64,000 nucleotides of DNA, taken from the IMG/VR virus record IMGVR_UViG_3300050821_002957, positions 62,001 through 126,000 of that record; one strand, written 5' to 3'. Positions within the stretch are counted from its first letter, which is position 1. Every line of letters begins with the position of its first letter. This document shows positions 46,015 to 59,667 of this stretch, in pieces. The notes under the pieces are model-generated. The model was not told the DNA's origin. It saw nothing but the letters and a program-made list of their open reading frames with translations, and made no database searches. A program made the position numbers and the translations under genes.

Positions 46015-47004
46015 CTACTCACCGATTGTCAAGCATTTTTGCGCCGTGATGGAATTGAACGAAGCGGCTTTCTTCACGATGTATGTACCCTGCTCGGTAA
46101 CAATTTTTCCGGTCTTCTTGTTGGCCGTCTTGATGTAGCCGTAGTCGTGATACGTGCTGCCGAATTCCTTGAAGCGCAATTCGTACTGAACACGGAACGG
46201 GTCCAAGTAATCAGCGATAACATACTTCAATAGTTCATTGCCTTCTGCATCAAACACGTCCCAACGAACATGATTGTACATCGTGACGTTTAAAATGTCC
46301 TTGAACTTTTGCGGCGGTTCGTTAAACAGATTGACTTCTTTCACCACCGTCTTCACAATATCAATAGTAATGATGTCAAGAGCCGCCAAGTATTCGACCA
46401 CTTCGGTGCGAAAATCCTGGTTCTCTAACATGTCATCGACCACTTCACCGATCACTGGGATTCCAAGATTTGCAAATTTCTTCAAATAATGGATGCGGCT
46501 TGGCCGGTCGATCAGTGCCTCGGAGACATTCATCGTGTTGGCTGTGAGAACGAACAGACGCCTGGAAGGTGCATTCAGTGCTCCATCCATGATTGCCAGC
46601 AATGCATCAGACTTTCCAAAAATTTTCTCGTACTCATCGATCATCACAACGACTTCCTGATCGATGTAACTGAGGAAGTTGATCAGATCCGCACCTTTGT
46701 TGTAGTCCTGCGCCACCAAGATTACAGGTAGCTTGGAGTAGTTGCAAATCTGTTCGGCTTGGACGGTCTTGCCAGTTCCCTTGAGGCCGCACAACATCAC
46801 ACCAAGATTTCCCGTCTTGGCTTTGAACGATTTGATGACTCGATCAGGAAACCCATCACTACCGTAGAGCTTGTACGGAAAGACAAATTCTTCCTTCATC
46901 CTATCGAGATACATTGATCCAAAAGGACCGTATTCCAGAGTGTAGACGCCTACCGGCAATCTCTCTAGCTCTTCGCTCTTTTCAAAAAACCATTTTGTGA
47001 CCAC
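46015..47004 (-). CDS. AAA+ ATPase
   Basis: Walker A GLKGTGKT; Walker B VMIDEYE; sensor 1 LTAN; DRPSRI arginine finger. Confidence 0.9.
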   Translation of the reverse strand: MVTKWFFEKSEELERLPVGVYTLEYGPFGSMYLDRMKEEFVFPYKLYGSDGFPDRVIKSFKAKTGNLGVMLCGLKGTGKTVQAEQICNYSKLPVILVAQDYNKGADLINFLSYIDQEVVVMIDEYEKIFGKSDALLAIMDGALNAPSRRLFVLTANTMNVSEALIDRPSRIHYLKKFANLGIPVIGEVVDDMLENQDFRTEVVEYLAALDIITIDIVKTVVKEVNLFNEPPQKFKDILNVTMYNHVRWDVFDAEGNELLKYVIADYLDPFRVQYELRFKEFGSTYHDYGYIKTANKKTGKIVTEQGTYIVKKAASFNSITAQKCLTIGE

Positions 47005-47906: not shown

Positions 47907-50495
47907 CTACTTCGATACTGCTTTGACTTTGCTGAGGTTCGCAATGTTGGAAACCATGCCTTCGAGAGGGGTTCCAGCGAACATCTGAGTGAGCGTACCG
48001 GAGAGGCTTTCGCCACGAACGATGGACAACGGAGCCAGATGCTCTGCAATCTTCTCGAACATGCCTTCTTGTGCCATTCCGACCAGAGCTTCGACCAGCG
48101 CCGGTTGCACAGACTTCATGCGTACATCGCTTGCCTTGGCTTCTTCGACCAAGAGACTGATCTTACGATCCAGTTCTTGTTGAGCGACCGCCTGCTTGTG
48201 TTCGTCAGCAGCTTTGGTCGTTTCCAGATACAACGCCTGTGTTATTTTGGCGATTTCGGCTGCATCTTGCTCGCCCTTCTTGCGGAGAACAGAAGCAGCA
48301 TTTTCAGCTTCGATTTGTGCCCGATTGTTAGTAGCAGAACGAGCAACAGCATCAGCAGCGATCTTATCTTTCATCTCTGCTGTGATTGAATATTCCGTTT
48401 CAATCTGGCGTTGAACATTCTCTTTGCCCTTGACGAGCGTGAGTTTGTTTTGAGTACGTTCAAGTTCGATGGCTTCCGAAAGAATGTCTTGGCGAGACTT
48501 GGAAAGCATGTTCGCCACTTCATTGTCTCTGACCGTAATCGTGATCAATTCCAAATCGTAGACAGTCATGCCGTTTTCGGAGAAGTGCTTGAGAGGCCGT
48601 TCGCTGGTGGTTGCCTTCGTGCCCAGGACAGTATCCCGCAGAATGTTCGCTGCGTTGCTGTAAAATTCCTGGACGCCGATGTTGCGAACAGCATTGCCAA
48701 TCAGAGAGCGAAGATGATCAACCATGTACTGGACATAATTGTCAACAGAGAACCACTTGTTCTTGTCGGCTTCGTCGAACCGCACAAGATACTTAACCTG
48801 GATATCGACATTCACCAAATCCTGAGTCTTCAGGCTGATAATGTCGGACACCGGATTCGAGATGTAACGCAGATACGCCGTAGGCATACGAGTGTCATTG
48901 TTCTTCGGCTTGCCCTTCGACAAAGACAGACGTTCCAGACCTTCGTCGTATTGCAGAAGAACAGTCTGTGGACCAACGACAGTGCGCCGGTCACCTTTGC
49001 TGTTTACGACTTGAACTGCAAAACCAGACCACGGTGAAATACGAACTGCACCGTCGTACTTGGTGTTGAGCGTAATGGTGCGTGGTGGCGTGTACTTCGT
49101 ACCACGATTCATCACATCGCCAGCGAGACCCTTACCAACAGCTTCACGAACCGGATCGGAATACGAAGCTGCCATGAACGACCGAGTAGACATACGTGTG
49201 TCTTCCAAGGCCGATTCCAGGCCACGATAACTAGCCGCCGCAGGAGCAGCGCCGCCAGCATTGCCGTAGAAATTACCAGGATTAGCGTCACGAAGTTCAC
49301 GATTGATGTCCAGAACTTCTGCATTGCCAGGATAGTACAGTTCACATTCGCTGTCGCTTAACGCACGACGAACTACAACTTCCTTACGAGGGTCGGGCAA
49401 GAACATTCTCGGCCCTTCGACAAGGTTTACTTCGCCGGTCTCACGATTCAGAACATAACGACCTTCACCGGCAGGAATTGCAACGGCGAATGACTTTGCG
49501 AAACCGCCGTACATAATCGTCGAATGCTCTTCACGAGGATAATAAATCGGTTGATCTTCGCCCGTAATGAAAAGTTCTTGACCAGCGGTGTACTTCGTTC
49601 CGCCTGTCACGGTGCCGTCTTCATTGGTCACGCCGCCTTCGACATAATCGGCAATGACTTTGATGTGCATACCAGTGGTCGGCTGCAATTCTTCCGCACG
49701 AAATTTGCGAGCGCCGTCTTTGGTATAGAATTGCTGAGTGGGAGTCGGGAAAACTACATCGGGACCGATCTTGTATTCCTTGTTCCCGCTTTCACCCAAC
49801 AAGATAGCGTATTCAAGGCGTTCGAGCGTCACAGCATCACGAATGTACTTGCTGTTTTCGTCGGTTAGAACTTCGACGCCGGTAGGAGGGATATAAAAGG
49901 CAACGGCAGTTCCCTTGATAACCAAGAGTTGCCCGGTTACCAGAGTGTCTTTGTTGATGCCCAAGACATTGGTGGTTTCGACGTTTGTAGTCGTATCGTC
50001 AGTGGTTGCGCCCTTGACGACAGACTTGTCCCAATTTGCTTTTGCAGCTTCGTCGTCATAGACCCTAACCATCAAATACTGATTACTGCGAAGATGGTGG
50101 CCTTTGATGACAGTTGCGACTTGACCCGGCCACAGTGCGAACGACTTCGGCCCAGGAAGGTTTTCAATTTGGCCCATCTTGAGCGAGCCAACGGTCATTG
50201 TTTCGGTCTTGCCTGCTTCTGGCTGCTTACCAGTGGATGCAGGGTTTTCCAGAACCACATAACTGCCCTTCGGGACCAGAATGTCGGTTTGGATTGCGGT
50301 TGCTTGGTCTCGTGCGGGAACGAATTTCTTTGAATCCGCATTGTACGTTACGAGTTGATCGGTGTTGCTGAGTGACGACTTGTACGGCCCACAGTACGTG
50401 TTAATGTTGCCCTTGGTATTGTCTTGGACATACGCAAACACGCCTGGAGGAAGCACTAACTCAGTATCACGACCTTGCTTATAGTCTTCTGCCAT
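47907..50495 (-). CDS. major vault protein (MVP) homologue, full length
   Basis: Vault repeats (LPPGVFAYVQDNTKG...GP; IPAGEGRYVLNRETGEV..V.GP; AVQV......RTVVGP..V.L...E....LSLS.GKPK); shoulder (D.I..KT.D...FSV.NYV......RS.I..AV......EF..N...I.R..V.G, F.ENGM.V); long cap helix. Confidence 0.85.
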   Translation of the reverse strand: MAEDYKQGRDTELVLPPGVFAYVQDNTKGNINTYCGPYKSSLSNTDQLVTYNADSKKFVPARDQATAIQTDILVPKGSYVVLENPASTGKQPEAGKTETMTVGSLKMGQIENLPGPKSFALWPGQVATVIKGHHLRSNQYLMVRVYDDEAAKANWDKSVVKGATTDDTTTNVETTNVLGINKDTLVTGQLLVIKGTAVAFYIPPTGVEVLTDENSKYIRDAVTLERLEYAILLGESGNKEYKIGPDVVFPTPTQQFYTKDGARKFRAEELQPTTGMHIKVIADYVEGGVTNEDGTVTGGTKYTAGQELFITGEDQPIYYPREEHSTIMYGGFAKSFAVAIPAGEGRYVLNRETGEVNLVEGPRMFLPDPRKEVVVRRALSDSECELYYPGNAEVLDINRELRDANPGNFYGNAGGAAPAAASYRGLESALEDTRMSTRSFMAASYSDPVREAVGKGLAGDVMNRGTKYTPPRTITLNTKYDGAVRISPWSGFAVQVVNSKGDRRTVVGPQTVLLQYDEGLERLSLSKGKPKNNDTRMPTAYLRYISNPVSDIISLKTQDLVNVDIQVKYLVRFDEADKNKWFSVDNYVQYMVDHLRSLIGNAVRNIGVQEFYSNAANILRDTVLGTKATTSERPLKHFSENGMTVYDLELITITVRDNEVANMLSKSRQDILSEAIELERTQNKLTLVKGKENVQRQIETEYSITAEMKDKIAADAVARSATNNRAQIEAENAASVLRKKGEQDAAEIAKITQALYLETTKAADEHKQAVAQQELDRKISLLVEEAKASDVRMKSVQPALVEALVGMAQEGMFEKIAEHLAPLSIVRGESLSGTLTQMFAGTPLEGMVSNIANLSKVKAVSK

Positions 50496-56630: not shown

Positions 56631-56936
56631 TTAATCGTAGCTCGAAAAATCTACTCGAAGCCTCTCGAACTCGATATCCTGCCACTTCAAATTCGACAAA
56701 TCCGTCATAGATTCACCGAAGCTCACATCACAATTACATGAGCATCCACCTGAGTGGCACGAAAAAACCATTCCTTCAGCATCTACACCAATGCCTTCAT
56801 AGCAATGGTGGCCGTAACCCTCGTCCCAATTGTTGATCTCTTCTACGATGACCAACTCTTTTTCAGAACCATGATCAATAAAGGTGCTCTTCGGCAACTT
56901 GCCATAGTTCTTCTTCACATACGTCTGTATCGTCAT
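56631..56936 (-). CDS. hypothetical protein
   Basis: GAGG Shine-Dalgarno; GCSC motif. Confidence 0.55.
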   Translation of the reverse strand: MTIQTYVKKNYGKLPKSTFIDHGSEKELVIVEEINNWDEGYGHHCYEGIGVDAEGMVFSCHSGGCSCNCDVSFGESMTDLSNLKWQDIEFERLRVDFSSYD

Positions 56937-57693
56937 ATTCGTCTGCCTCCGAATCGTCAAATAGCTTTTCGTGTACTTCACCCAACTTTCTCTCCAATGC
57001 CGCTTCAGACCGGAGCCAACGAGTTTTTACTCCATGACAATTTGAACAGCGAATCCTAAGATTCTCAAGTTCATTATTCATAGGATTACTATCAATATGA
57101 TCCAACTCAAGCGGAGCCGGATATCCTCTCCAGTCACTAATTCCACAATCCTCACATTTTCTTTGCTTGATACCTTCTTGTATCAAACGTTCTCGCAAAG
57201 CCGCTGAACTTATTGTGGAACCAATACACAAATATTCTGTAATTGCTTTTCGTTTATACGGCGGTTTCTCAATAAAATGAGAATGTTCTACCCCCAGTTC
57301 TATAACTCTACGACGCAATTTGTTAAAATTGTTATTTCCTGGCTGGATCTTAACCAACGTACACAATTCTAACCATGTCTGTGATGCAGCTACCAATGGA
57401 ACCAAATATTCCTTTGTATATTTTCTCTTCGCACCCAGTGACTTAATAAGCGCCGCATCTAGATGTTCAAAAGAAATCCCAAAAAATTTAGCACGCCCTC
57501 GAAGATAGGTATACCGAGAACCACACACCTGCACTCCCAAAACTAAGCAAACTTCACGCCACGTTTGATTGCCAGAAATTGCTCTACTCAATTCATCAAA
57601 AGAATATTTACGATTACGTGTGTGGTAACATGGTTGACACGTTTTCGCTTTTCCTGTTGATATGATCCTCCCACAATGCTGACATGTATTCAT
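56875..57693 (-). CDS. HNH homing endonuclease with tandem N-terminal DNA-binding repeats
   Basis: CEDCG..DW.G....LELDHID.N..NN.LENL...C.NCH; two KY(S/T)...L...QTW.E.C repeats. Confidence 0.88.
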   Translation of the reverse strand: MNTCQHCGRIISTGKAKTCQPCYHTRNRKYSFDELSRAISGNQTWREVCLVLGVQVCGSRYTYLRGRAKFFGISFEHLDAALIKSLGAKRKYTKEYLVPLVAASQTWLELCTLVKIQPGNNNFNKLRRRVIELGVEHSHFIEKPPYKRKAITEYLCIGSTISSAALRERLIQEGIKQRKCEDCGISDWRGYPAPLELDHIDSNPMNNELENLRIRCSNCHGVKTRWLRSEAALERKLGEVHEKLFDDSEADEYDDTDVCEEELWQVAEEHLY

Positions 57694-57729
57694 ATCAGCA
57701 TTTAGACACCTAATTTCAGATGTCAAATA

Positions 57730-57815
57730 TGGTCGCCGAGGACGGATTTGAACCGTCACGTCCTTGCGGACACTAGGCCCTCAACCTAGCGTGTCTGCCG
57801 TTTCACCACTCGGCG
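57730..57815 (-). tRNA. tRNA-Leu(GAG)
   Basis: CTAGG-TT-GAG-GG-CCTAG; A73; CCA. Confidence 0.93.
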
Positions 57816-57850: not shown

Positions 57851-57926
57851 TCAGGAAGGTGAGATTTGAACTCACGAATTTCTCCAATCCGAATGGAGTG
57901 GGGCAACCAGACTCCCCTTCTTCCTG
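57851..57926 (-). tRNA. tRNA-Pro(CGG) with A37, A8 and no encoded CCA
   Basis: CTCCA-TT-CGG-AT-TGGAG; C1-G72; A73. Confidence 0.82.
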
Positions 57927-57930
57927 AAAA

Positions 57931-58021
57931 TGGACCTGAGCATGGGCGGTGCTGTCCTAAGACCCACCATGATTCTCCAGCACCGTGTTTGCTGGCGGCA
58001 TTCCTTTATGCCTACATCAGG
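57931..58021 (-). ncRNA. tRNA-like RNA with expanded T-loop and CCA end
   Basis: Acceptor CCTGA(T)G/CTCAGG-T-CCA; D-arm GGCAT/ATGCC; arm CCAGCA/TGCTGG; T-stem CATGG/CCATG enclosing 21 nt. Confidence 0.7.
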
Positions 58022-58106
58022 ATTTAACTCGGAATGTTGGTAGACCGTTCGGGTAGAAATCTATCCCAACGACGGTCCCTTACTGATTTCATAACCAACA
58101 TAAAAA

Positions 58107-58205: not shown

Positions 58206-58367
58206 TTAAATGTCGTATGCACAACTGCGTTCACAATCAGGACAACAATTACACATCGTCACAGAGTTGGGATGAATTTCTTCGTCAAATGGGCAGGGAT
58301 GTAACTCGACTGTACCCTCATGACCACACCCACTCGGATGCGTACAATAATAATTGTTATCAGTCAT
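58206..58367 (-). CDS. Cys-rich small protein (start approximate)
   Basis: AAGGAAG Shine-Dalgarno; HPCPFDEEI....CNCC.DC...CA.DI motif. Confidence 0.6.
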   Translation of the reverse strand: MTDNNYYCTHPSGCGHEGTVELHPCPFDEEIHPNSVTMCNCCPDCERSCAYDI

Positions 58368-58386
58368 ACAACTTCCTTTCAAACTT

Positions 58387-58463
58387 TGGTTGCCAGGATG
58401 GGACTCTCCCTTACGGGCCGACGATCTCAACGTTGTGCGTCTGCCAAATTCCGCCACCCGGCA
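58387..58463 (-). pseudogene. tRNA-Leu(GAG)-like gene lacking the 5' half of the T-arm
   Basis: Intact acceptor, D, anticodon and V arms and CCA; the V-arm is followed directly by AGAGTCCCAT with no GGTTC. Confidence 0.7.
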
Positions 58464-58469
58464 ATAAAC

Positions 58470-58848
58470 TTGTGGGAGCTTTTCACTCCACTCGACTATT
58501 CTGACACATCAGTACAGCTACCCTGCTTACGGTCGTTACTCTGAGCCGCCGTAAGAACAAATTTAAATGAGTACGAACAAATAATCGAATAGTCGGATTA
58601 ATACCGCTGCGTCTACCATTCCGCCAACACTCGAAAATTCTGCTTTCGCATGTCGAGTGCCCTGGACTTGAACCAGGACGCCCCAGAGGGACGGCGGTGC
58701 CTGATAACCAACTACCTACGGCTCGTACTCAAACTCATTGGCTTCGGGTAATGACGACATAAATGCAGTCTTCGCCTCTCTTCGATCCCATCAGAGTTAT
58801 CCTGATGAAATGCCTCACGCCGCTTATTAGACGGCCTACATCAAACTG
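58470..58848 (-). ncRNA. structured RNA containing a circularly permuted tRNA-Leu (core 58601-58704)
   Basis: 3' half (anticodon 3' strand, V-arm, T-arm, acceptor, A73) precedes the 5' half (acceptor, D-arm, anticodon 5' strand); the flanks base-pair. Confidence 0.8.
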
Positions 58849-58850
58849 TG

Positions 58851-58931
58851 TAGCCAAGGAGGGACTCGAACCCTCAACCCTTGCGGGAACCGCTTCTGAG
58901 ACGGCTGCGTATGCCATTCCGCCACTCGGCT
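58851..58931 (-). tRNA. tRNA-Leu(CAG) with A37 and no encoded CCA
   Basis: GCCGT-CT-CAG-AA-GCGGT; V-arm; A73. Confidence 0.9.
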
Positions 58932-59097
58932 AAAATGAAGGTTGCCCAGTCCACAATACAGGTCATACCTACAATCCCTCTAGCTTCGATAAGCGGAGCA
59001 CACTTCGCTCGACGCTTGATGTCAGCCTACTTCGATTCGCACGAAGAACCCCTGAATCCAAATCAGGAAGGATACTCTTTCCCCATAGACTGAAACT

Positions 59098-59173: not shown

Positions 59174-59267
59174 GAATTTGTTCATGGTGTACGCTGTCAC
59201 TACAGACACACACGAAACGATATTTTTACTGTTTTGATTTAGCTGTCTCGAAGCAACTCAGGGAGAG

Positions 59268-59363
59268 TTACGACAGCAAACTAGGTAGGCTCGACGGGGA
59301 CAACGGCAAACCTACCACAGTAAGTGGCGATGAGCTTGGCGTTGATAAGAGTACGTTTTTCAT
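59268..59363 (-). CDS. 31-aa Leu/Ser/Pro-rich leader peptide of the tRNA operon
   Basis: MKNVLLSTPSSSPLTVVGLPLSPSSLPSLLS*; GGGA Shine-Dalgarno; first element after the promoter. Confidence 0.7.
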   Translation of the reverse strand: MKNVLLSTPSSSPLTVVGLPLSPSSLPSLLS

Positions 59364-59400
59364 TTTCTTGTTTCCCAGTCGATCTTTAATGATCTGACAC

Positions 59401-59434
59401 TATTTATACTAGCAGTCTTTTGGAATCCTGTCAA
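59401..59434 (-). promoter_or_regulatory. overlapping sigma70 and T4-late promoters of the tRNA operon
   Basis: TTGACA(59434-59429)-17-TAGTAT(59411-59406), overlapping TATAAATA(59408-59401). Confidence 0.8.
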
Positions 59435-59667
59435 GAGGTCTTTTCAGAATTCTTTTTCATAGCATTGAGAATTCGCTGGCGCACCATTCTCATAGAGCCG
59501 TGCCCGAACCCACACGCCCAGTCGGTGTACTTCTGGCCGCATTGGGAGCAAAAGTTTCGCATCGCACGCTCCATCTCTTCGACGGTCAAATCACCTTGGT
59601 ATTCGGCGGCTTGTTCCAATTCGGCGCAGTTGGTCGTAAAATCAAAACTGGTCTTCTCTTCGGTCAT
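59431..59667 (-). CDS. hypothetical zinc-binding protein
   Basis: CSQC......ACG..H; GGAG Shine-Dalgarno. Confidence 0.6.
   Translation of the reverse strand: MTEEKTSFDFTTNCAELEQAAEYQGDLTVEEMERAMRNFCSQCGQKYTDWACGFGHGSMRMVRQRILNAMKKNSEKTS

Follow-up and report, generated by a model that had tools for sequence, protein, structure and literature searches.

In YrlA RNAs (Rfam RF02553), the arms of a tRNA-like module follow the order V-T-AS-D, the acceptor stem is closed, the variable loops are often long and class II-like, and the anticodon stem runs on into the Ro60-binding stem (PMC4201824; bioRxiv 10.1101/312249). It has been proposed that these RNAs arose from dimeric tRNA transcripts (bioRxiv 10.1101/312249). 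In vivo, RNase P cleaves the YrlA RNA of M. smegmatis, whose acceptor stem is 7 bp long, and CCA is added; the YrlA RNA of S. Typhimurium is not cleaved (PMC4201824). Complexes of Ro60, Y RNA, and PNPase are described from Deinococcus, Salmonella, and phiLo (PMC4201824; PMC12135203); in the last of these, a Thermus phage, the phage-encoded Ro60 associates in vitro with Y-like RNAs of the phage and with PNPase of the host (PMC12135203).

Permuted tRNA genes (Cyanidioschyzon, some green algae, Thermofilum; PMC3978253, PMC3218864) likewise put the 3' half first and join the acceptor ends by a short spacer, but they contain a bulge-helix-bulge, are circularised by splicing endonuclease and ligase, and give decoding tRNAs, of which there is no sign at the locus described here. 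In the two-piece (permuted) tmRNA, the T-arm and the acceptor 3' strand also come before the acceptor 5' strand; our element differs in having no tag reading frame, pseudoknots, or Ala identity. A two-piece tmRNA was rejected, as ARAGORN and Rfam find none and there is no tag frame.

The locus lies in a 64,000-nt stretch of IMG/VR virus record IMGVR_UViG_3300050821_002957, hereafter “the window.” An earlier note, made from the letters alone, had read its minus strand as a circularly permuted tRNA-Leu embedded in a structured RNA of ~390 nt, and had offered three explanations: a spliced permuted tRNA, a Y-RNA-like tRNA mimic, or a chargeable Leu tRNA without an anticodon loop. Our reading, to which we give a probability of about 0.8, is that positions 58728-58567 (minus strand) encode a non-coding Y RNA of the YrlA type, of the bacterial and phage kind and 162 nt long. 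On this reading it is a new, somewhat atypical member of the YrlA family and not a new kind of tRNA gene. This assignment is carried by the fold, by membership of the family according to an independently trained model, by covariation of the family in every helix, by the linkage of the family to Ro60, and by paralogues in the same phage. The model, R1, was trained on 29 Ro60-adjacent phage Y RNAs, none from the window phage and none with a Leu-type D-arm. The parts of the element are as follows, listed for the minus strand.

58567..58728, minus: whole Y RNA (YrlA type), 162 nt; full-length R1 match, MFE fold z -2.99
58721..58728, minus: 5' strand of the basal stem, GUACGAGC, with its partner at 58571-58578; helix 1 of R1, all pairs standard
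58716..58724, minus: putative Ro60-binding motif GAGCCGUAG on the 5' strand; the near-invariant G.G(C/U)CG of Ro60-adjacent Y RNAs
58703..58716, minus: 5' strand of the inner rod, GGUAGUUGG, pairing with CCGACUAUU (58596-58588) and leading into the conserved GGUUAUC (58709-58703)
58694..58698, minus: 3' strand of the anticodon-type stem, ACCGC, with its partner GCGGU at 58603-58607; five perfect pairs
58679..58693, minus: variable-arm hairpin of class II type, CGUCCC-UCU-GGGGCG; from the MFE fold, V position as in YrlA (PMC4201824)
58661..58677, minus: T-arm, CCUGG-UUCAAGU-CCAGG; from the MFE fold and the R1 alignment
58627..58660, minus: closed 7-bp acceptor stem, whole unit including the linker; from reading and the MFE fold
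58660-58654, minus: acceptor 3' strand GCACUCG, pairing with CGAGUGU
58653, minus: A73, read from the sequence
58652-58634, minus: 19-nt linker with a UGC-GAAA-GCA hairpin, closing the acceptor stem; from the MFE fold
58633-58627, minus: acceptor 5' strand CGAGUGU, pairing with GCACUCG
58608..58626, minus: U8-G9, Leu-type D-arm GCGG-AAUGGUAG-ACGC (58624-58609), and A26; from reading and the R1 alignment
58567..58607, minus: 3' strands GCGGU, UAAUCC (58600-58595, conserved), CCGACUAUU, and AUUUGUUCGUAC, the last closing the basal stem; from R1
58716-58708/58596-58588 and 58731-58721/58578-58568, minus: rod pairs; from the MFE fold

All of the listed helices are recovered by unconstrained MFE folding (181 nt: -65 kcal/mol, z -4.68, with 0 of 200 shuffles as stable). 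The coordinates and pairings proposed earlier for the permuted arms and the rod are correct throughout. The extent of ~390 nt is not supported: structure does not exceed expectation in the 5' flank (58729-58849; z +0.13) and exceeds it only marginally in the 3' flank (z -2.4), and the R1 match covers 58728-58567 only. Similarly, a 9-nt complement at 58501-58493, from which a switch had been suggested, does exist, but the switch is unsupported, with about 0.3 such matches expected by chance in the flanks (an estimate).

The order of V, T-arm, closed acceptor stem-loop, and D-arm is that of YrlA, and the ends of the element pair into a stem in place of the anticodon loop, again as in YrlA. Further features in common with YrlA are a G.CG-type motif on the 5' strand and a UA-containing junction (GGUUAUC); YrlA RNAs, too, are known from both phages and bacteria, frequently as tandem copies beside tRNAs. 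There are differences as well. The D-arm is of the tRNA-Leu type (UGGCGGAAUGGUAGACGC), in place of the Rfam consensus GUAGCUCA..GGUAGAGC; the anticodon-type stem keeps all 5 bp, an insertion with respect to the R1 consensus, and the acceptor stem all 7 bp, together with A73; the element goes undetected by the Rfam model; and it stands within the Leu block of a tRNA array, no Ro60 gene having been found across the ~83 kb examined. The Yrl1 and Yrl2 RNAs of phiLo with its phiRo60, and the Y RNAs of mycobacteriophages such as Bxz1, are phage-encoded Y-like RNAs, as here, for which binding to phage Ro60 and, in phiLo, to host PNPase is known or predicted; they lie directly upstream of a phage Ro60 gene, whereas our element has no Ro60 gene in the span searched.

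By its letters, the tRNA-like domain is of class II, tRNA-Leu type. The nucleotides of the tRNA tertiary pairs U8/A14, A15/U48, G18G19, and T54/A58 are legible, and U 58678 could, as we read the sequence, form a Levitt pair with A15 of the D-loop. The acceptor stem of 7 bp carries A73 and a U at -1, and A73 is followed by CAU, not CCA; here the element departs from the M. smegmatis YrlA in encoding no CCA. Positions 58626-58603, which take in the D-arm and one strand of the anticodon-type stem, are identical at 21 of 24 nucleotides to positions 8-31 of the adjoining tRNA-Leu(CAG). The element has the look of a recent chimera, a Y-RNA stem joined to tRNA-Leu sequence, an appearance that fits the published idea of an origin of YrlA RNAs from dimeric tRNA transcripts.

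In the stem, GAGCCGUAG deviates at one place from the motif GNCGAAN0-1G (Chen et al. 2014, PMC4201824). The literal motif is absent from the element, which reads GCCGUAG (58722-58716) with U for the A of the motif, and the variant GGGUCGUAG also occurs in two Ro60-adjacent RNAs, L240 and L241. The consensus of phage Y RNAs consists of G.G(C/U)CG, GGUUA(U/C)C 8-12 nt on, and UAAACC past the D-arm; the element has GAGCCG, GGUUAUC, and UAAUCC in register. The junction in the rod is a 9 x 6 nt internal loop built from family-conserved Y-RNA motifs, and GGUUA is invariant in alignment A3.

The family itself was defined from its neighbours. In the control, mycobacteriophage Bxz1, a match to Rfam YrlA (RF02553) stands directly upstream of the Ro60 gene gp220 (32.5 bits, E 1.6e-4). 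A Ro60-seeded scan of IMG/VR found Ro60 orthologues on at least 186 viral contigs, and neighbours were studied for the best 80. In these loci, tandem RNAs adjoin the Ro60 genes on the same strand, just upstream, and share a consensus of G.G(C/U)CG, GGUUA(U/C)C, a V hairpin, a T-arm, a closed acceptor, a D-arm (of various tRNA types), UAAACCC, and a closing strand. In the 29 RNAs used for R1, compensatory changes occur in 25 of 30 consensus pairs (MAFFT and RNAalifold), a result that precedes any model fitting.

Run over the window, R1 gave a single full-length match, 58728-58567, spanning model positions 1-135 (46.8 bits, E 3.7e-10, the E-values of R1 being rough owing to a shortened calibration). 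The remaining matches in the 64 kb are bare tRNA T-arms at no more than 13.3 bits. Every pair of R1 helices 1 and 2 is standard in the element. Over 41 sources, R1 found 96 matches at E<=1e-5, and those in Ro60 loci nearly all share the strand of the Ro60 gene and form arrays immediately upstream of it. Among relatives with a Leu-type module, one (L240:3786-3916, 57.1 bits) lies just downstream of Ro60 and another (L058) ~3.8 kb upstream of it on the same strand; tblastn with Bxz1 gp220 places Ro60 beside three of the loci found by pattern, adjacent in L020, at ~3.8 kb in L058, and at 2.6 kb in L062, the last two on the same strand.

In an alignment of 95 distinct matches, which is fitted to the model, 95.6% of cells pair, compared with 36-44% with slid partners; double changes occur in 29 of 30 pairs, and the covariation score is 0.673 against at most 0.122. 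Helix 1 has a compensatory change in 8 of its 8 pairs in these 95 sequences, and in the same model-fitted alignment so does every pair of the basal stem and rod. A lack of covariation in the flanking rod had been named beforehand as one observation that would refute the earlier reading; covariation is found both before and after model fitting.

R1 also matches beyond the window end, at window-equivalent 67.2-69.1 kb, which is 8.5-10.5 kb from the element. In this part of the same phage, three or more Y RNAs are clear (70-84 bits) and several others weaker, with three further tRNAs interleaved. The best scores are 84.3 bits (L002:6239-6384), 76.9 bits (L002:6099-6232), 70.2 bits (L002:5571-5725), and 31.8 bits (L002:4461-4597), followed by three weaker matches in L002 of 23.5-30.2 bits. 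When the window element is aligned with the four best of these, GAGCCG, GUU(A/C)UC, and AUUUGUUC are invariant in all five, and the tRNA-like domains differ, siblings with the same stem carrying other D-arm types. Rfam YrlA itself matches one sibling (L002:6256-6370) over model positions 1-114, the whole model, at 40 bits and E 4.3e-6, and a second sibling partially, at 27.7 bits. Compared with these, the window element is a divergent paralogue of bona fide YrlA-type RNAs. The R1 match and the paralogues together support the Y-RNA-like mimic of YrlA topology, the second of the three readings that had been offered.

The source is a T4-like myovirus from soil, with gp5 and gp6 baseplate proteins, an MVP-like ORF, and an HNH endonuclease within the tRNA array. 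On the strand of the element, ARAGORN predicts 14 ordinary tRNAs from 44.6 to 59.2 kb and, at the locus of the element, neither a tRNA nor a tmRNA. Normal tRNA-Leu genes for UAA, CAA, UAG, GAG, and CAG, all five bacterial anticodons, are among its predictions. Within the Leu block, the tRNA-Leu(CAG) gene lies 120 nt upstream of the element, and a broken tRNA-Leu(GAG)-like sequence lies next to it at 58463-58390.

The locus is genuine and not an assembly artefact, a doubt raised at the outset: a 77.5-kb contig of the source soil run spans it with zero differences, and it is identical in two IMG/VR assemblies, on a 68.8-kb contig and on a 405,631-bp contig. A 404-kb ENA contig has identical neighbouring genes. 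By blastn, the only match among 50,697 phage records is to Tunturiibacter phage Tunturi_5, over 43 nt of the broken tRNA alongside; R1 has no match in that region of Tunturi_5. With the 389-aa neighbour protein as query, the same phage was the only match. The MVP-like protein finds two related phages, at 67-68% identity and with the same tRNA gene order; at the syntenic site these have no R1 match, only a 166-nt spacer. Such absence from relatives indicates that the window element is young or dispensable.

In one soil metatranscriptome, low-depth contigs cover 57896-58083, 58728-58967, and 59219-59507. The second runs from tRNA-Leu(CAG) into the spacer and ends at 58728, where the R1 match begins. 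Its end could mark a processing site, reflect a small structured RNA having been lost from the library, or be due to chance, the depth being ~5. No metatranscriptome contig lies over the Y RNA itself, and none gives joints or ends. Transcription of the region is weakly indicated, DNA carry-over being possible. A search for a promoter or terminator specific to the element gave neither, and the element is therefore probably transcribed as part of the array.

A partner gene was sought in the neighbourhood. With Bxz1 gp220 as query, tblastn finds no Ro60 gene across the window and L002, and the TROVE Pfam model has no match among 20 window ORFs or the gene lists covering window-equivalent 50-83.5 kb. 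Taken together, these searches found no Ro60/TROVE gene from window position 1 to window-equivalent ~83.5 kb of the 405,631-bp contig, that is, over 58 kb on one side and ~25 kb on the other. The arrangement used as a criterion by Chen et al. (2014), a Ro60 gene within ~4 kb on the same strand, is thus not seen here. Two Ro60-seeded IMG/VR scans (best 80 loci) do not list the 405-kb contig, nor do they list the proven Ro60 of L058. A comparable case is another huge-phage locus, L189, with a 6-kb array of Y RNAs and no Ro60 in the 11 kb examined. The Ro60 partner of the window element may be encoded far off in the phage or supplied by the host. In huge phages, then, Y RNAs can stand in arrays among tRNA genes, distant from any Ro60 gene.

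By analogy with these systems, we infer that the window element would bind Ro60, recruit an effector, undergo processing, and play a role during infection. Most likely it is transcribed with the tRNA array and then cut out along with it. By homology, the bulged basal stem with GAGCCGUAG would bind the ring of Ro60 (Rsr, a TROVE-domain protein), encoded elsewhere in the 405-kb genome or taken from the host. The anticodon-type stem continues into the Ro60 stem, replacing the anticodon loop, and the job of the L-shaped tRNA-like module would be to bring in a partner that binds tRNA or acts in RNA decay, for example PNPase.

To place the permuted module in a wider setting, IMG/VR was scanned with a pattern of a T-loop followed at a short distance by a Leu-type D-arm. 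Each junction was tested for complementarity between the 7 bases after the T-stem and the 7 before U8, and for an ARAGORN tRNA on either side. Among 225 distinct junctions, ordinary tandem tRNAs peak at 3-4/7 complementary, the chance level. Set apart from these is a class of 20 junctions (19 independent) in which all 7 positions are complementary and neither side bears an ARAGORN tRNA. Acceptor-closed permuted tRNA-like modules are therefore a recurrent feature of phage tRNA arrays, and most of the contigs concerned measure 100-400 kb. CCA directly after A73 is encoded in 5 of the 19 independent modules (L007, L039, L060, L061, and L189), and that of L189 is also a full-length Y RNA match (R1, 57.7 bits).

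These observations bear on what else the locus might be. A genuine circularly permuted tRNA-Leu gene, whose rod would be cut and whose ends would be joined to a 7-nt anticodon loop to give a decoding tRNA, would account for a 3' half placed before a 5' half, for complementary acceptor strands with a short spacer, and for cloverleaf stems that all pair; a 7-nt loop with CAG, UAG, or UAA can also be drawn. Indeed, a Leu anticodon had been reported in every register, but the conservation of GGUUAUC and UAAUCC explains this: the loop letters are those of the family motifs GGUUAUC and UAA(A/U)CC, not of an anticodon loop, and they are present in Y RNAs with non-Leu domains too. The rod has no bulge-helix-bulge (its internal loop is 9 x 6 nt), the five normal Leu isoacceptors leave no missing tRNA to be supplied, siblings with the same stem have other types of D-arm, and a search of the literature gave no case of a permuted tRNA gene from bacteria or phages. 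We consider a spliced permuted tRNA highly improbable. A tempting false lead, a permuted tRNA gene in a bacterial virus, is thereby removed, and the locus is now filed correctly. The position in the Leu block beside a broken tRNA-Leu(GAG)-like sequence, the 21/24 identity to tRNA-Leu(CAG), and the absence from the two related phages would also suit a decaying, functionless relic in which the 3' part of one tRNA-Leu gene is followed by the 5' part of its tandem neighbour. This too is very unlikely, as seven helices are all intact, the flanks are not tRNA halves but the Y-RNA basal module common to the paralogues 8.5-10.5 kb off, and an acceptor complementarity of 7/7 with no flanking tRNA marks a class apart from tandem tRNAs, which peak at 3-4/7.

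Other proposals concern what a Y RNA might do. TROVE proteins bind both Y RNAs and vault RNAs, and TEP1 is the TROVE protein of eukaryotic vaults. By analogy with vault RNA and TEP1, the element could be a partner or cargo RNA of a vault-like particle made from the MVP-like protein, the ORF of which (MVP_shoulder 6.9e-22, Vault_3) lies at 47907-50495, 8 kb off on the same strand. We give this hardly any credence: the two relatives keep the MVP-like gene (67-68% identity) with no Y RNA match within 10 kb, and no TROVE or TEP1-like gene was found nearby. RNase P might instead open the element at 58634/58633, after which trimming of the linker and addition of CCA would yield a two-piece, LeuRS-chargeable, anticodon-less mimic of Leu-tRNA, or a decoy of LeuRS or RNase P, possibly still bound to Ro60. 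The 7-bp acceptor stem, A73, and the U at -1 are compatible with this, as are the M. smegmatis precedent of an RNase P cut and CCA addition in vivo (PMC4201824) and the CCA-bearing Leu-type modules, one of them in a full-length Y RNA; the CAU after A73 in the window and the uncleaved YrlA of S. Typhimurium speak against it. We regard it as unlikely and, were it so, as an added property of the Y RNA, not an alternative identity. In charging it, LeuRS would rely on A73 and the Leu-type D-arm, with no need of an anticodon; LeuRS of E. coli requires A73 and the tertiary core, not the anticodon. It is a distinctly long shot that the phage makes an RNase P-opened, CCA-bearing, leucylated, and Ro60-tethered anticodon-less Leu-tRNA mimic; if it does, the leucylated mimic could supply a tRNA-dependent transferase, sequester LeuRS or RNase P, or divert defence nucleases that target tRNAs.

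The chargeable, anticodon-less Leu tRNA offered in the earlier note would be possible only secondarily, once RNase P has opened the acceptor stem (cf. M. smegmatis YrlA, PMC4201824).

A permuted group I intron was tried as well. Group I introns can be hosted by tRNA-Leu, but no register with a 7-nt loop satisfies the splice-site rules, a final U in the 5' exon and a final G in the intron, and the Y-RNA stem accounts fully for the flanks, so this candidate was rejected.

The Y RNA that we favour widens the known range of its family: phage Y RNAs can bear a class II, tRNA-Leu-type domain, seemingly a fresh borrowing from the adjoining tRNA gene. It also has a practical side. At the gathering score and at E<=10 alike, the sole Rfam match at the locus is the neighbouring tRNA-Leu(CAG), with none to the YrlA, tmRNA, or group I/II intron models; the Rfam comparison proposed earlier was thus silent on the element itself and positive for YrlA in its same-phage sibling. 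The gathering score of RF02553 is 69 bits, and the element falls below it, as do Bxz1 (32.5) and the sibling (40), which indicates that the cut-off is too strict for phage members. GOLLD (RF02032) and ROOL gave no match at E<=10 over 58250-59000; the same tool scores a true GOLLD in L061 at 188.5 bits. Annotation pipelines that rely on the Rfam YrlA model will overlook phage Y RNAs of this kind, and R1 detects them.

Leu-type permuted modules are acceptor-closed tRNA-like units in which the T-arm comes before a Leu-type D-arm. Of 19 independent examples, five (loci L189, L007, L039, L060, and L061 from viral contigs) encode CCA directly 3′ of A73; the chance of finding CCA at this position is 1/64 per module. 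The L189 module is also a full-length match to the Y RNA covariance model:

L189:6018-6166, minus strand, permuted module, full-length Y RNA match (57.7 bits)

This suggests that the design of some phage Y RNAs allows RNase P cleavage to leave a CCA end exposed. Another of the five modules lies in the variable linker of a different structured RNA:

L061:7545-8034, plus strand, GOLLD RNA (RF02032, 188.5 bits)

Here, the module runs from T-arm to acceptor 3′ strand, ACCA, a 9-nt loop, and acceptor 5′ strand, followed by a Leu-type D-arm and a complete anticodon arm (loop AUGAUAA); the break falls at the variable-loop position. Normal tRNAs have been reported embedded in published GOLLDs (PMC12990946); for a permuted tRNA-like module within a GOLLD, we found no report in the literature.

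Four loci carry permuted Leu-type modules of a second type:

L026:3021-3150, plus strand, second-type module
L033:7213-7340, plus strand, second-type module
L222:2718-2850, plus strand, second-type module
L057:7500-7640, plus strand, second-type module

These modules carry a short hairpin after the D-arm, at the position of the anticodon arm, with a GNRA, UNCG-type, or longer loop, and their exit helix occupies the variable-arm position. The T-arm (GCAGGUUCGA..CCUGC) is nearly identical in all four, there is covariation in the acceptor and closing stems, and ACU(A/G)AACCC is conserved upstream at three of the loci. R1, the covariance model derived from 29 Ro60-adjacent phage Y RNAs, aligns to the tRNA-like core only (model positions 44-107), and no Rfam family corresponds to these modules.

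The phage itself has further Y RNAs just beyond the end of the window, identified as covariance-model matches on a second contig locus:

L002:4461-6384 (window-equivalent about 67.2-69.1 kb), Y RNA array

Up to seven matches are present, with three tRNA genes interspersed among them; three of the matches are clear (70-84 bits), a fourth scores 31.8 bits, and the other three score 23-30. No Ro60 gene was found in the 64 kb downstream of this array, nor upstream of it over a distance of at least 14 kb.

For the Y RNA of the window, a soil metatranscriptome contig of 240 nt (depth 4.8) spans 58728-58967 and joins tRNA-Leu(CAG) to the spacer that follows it. Its end coincides exactly with the base at which the Y RNA model match begins; no RNA contig from that metatranscriptome covers the Y RNA itself. 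The syntenic spacer in a related phage and two neighbors within the window's tRNA array are as follows:

L402:2317-2484, plus strand, spacer syntenic to the window Y RNA
58390-58463, minus strand, broken tRNA-Leu(GAG)-like sequence
56875-57759, minus strand, HNH endonuclease ORF (phrog_10822, 1.4e-39)

The L402 spacer holds D-arm-like and T-arm-like segments ~90 nt apart and receives no tRNA call from ARAGORN; a tRNA that has been disrupted, or one that carries an intron, may lie here. The broken tRNA-Leu(GAG)-like sequence, called by neither ARAGORN nor Rfam, retains the acceptor 5′ strand, D-arm, anticodon arm (loop UUGAGAU), and V hairpin and lacks the 5′ half of the T-arm; its first 43 nt share 91% identity with a region of Tunturiibacter phage Tunturi_5 that carries no annotation. 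The HNH endonuclease ORF, probably a mobile element, is inserted between the array's tRNA-Leu(UAG) and tRNA-Leu(GAG).

The phage's gene content beyond the window, on the upstream side of the tRNA/Y RNA region (window-equivalent about 64-83 kb), includes genes for a translation initiation factor IF-3 homologue, an R2K-type ATP-grasp protein, endonuclease VII, thioredoxin, an ATP-dependent ligase (DNA_ligase_A_M), a 2OG-Fe(II) oxygenase, and ABC-transporter and OmpA-domain proteins. The window also contains an MVP-like gene:

47907-50495, minus strand, 862-aa ORF, Major Vault Protein domains (shoulder and repeat)

This ORF, which matches no PHROG family, adjoins an AAA ATPase (46015-47004) and is kept at 67-68% identity in L400 and L402, viral contigs with syntenic tRNA arrays.
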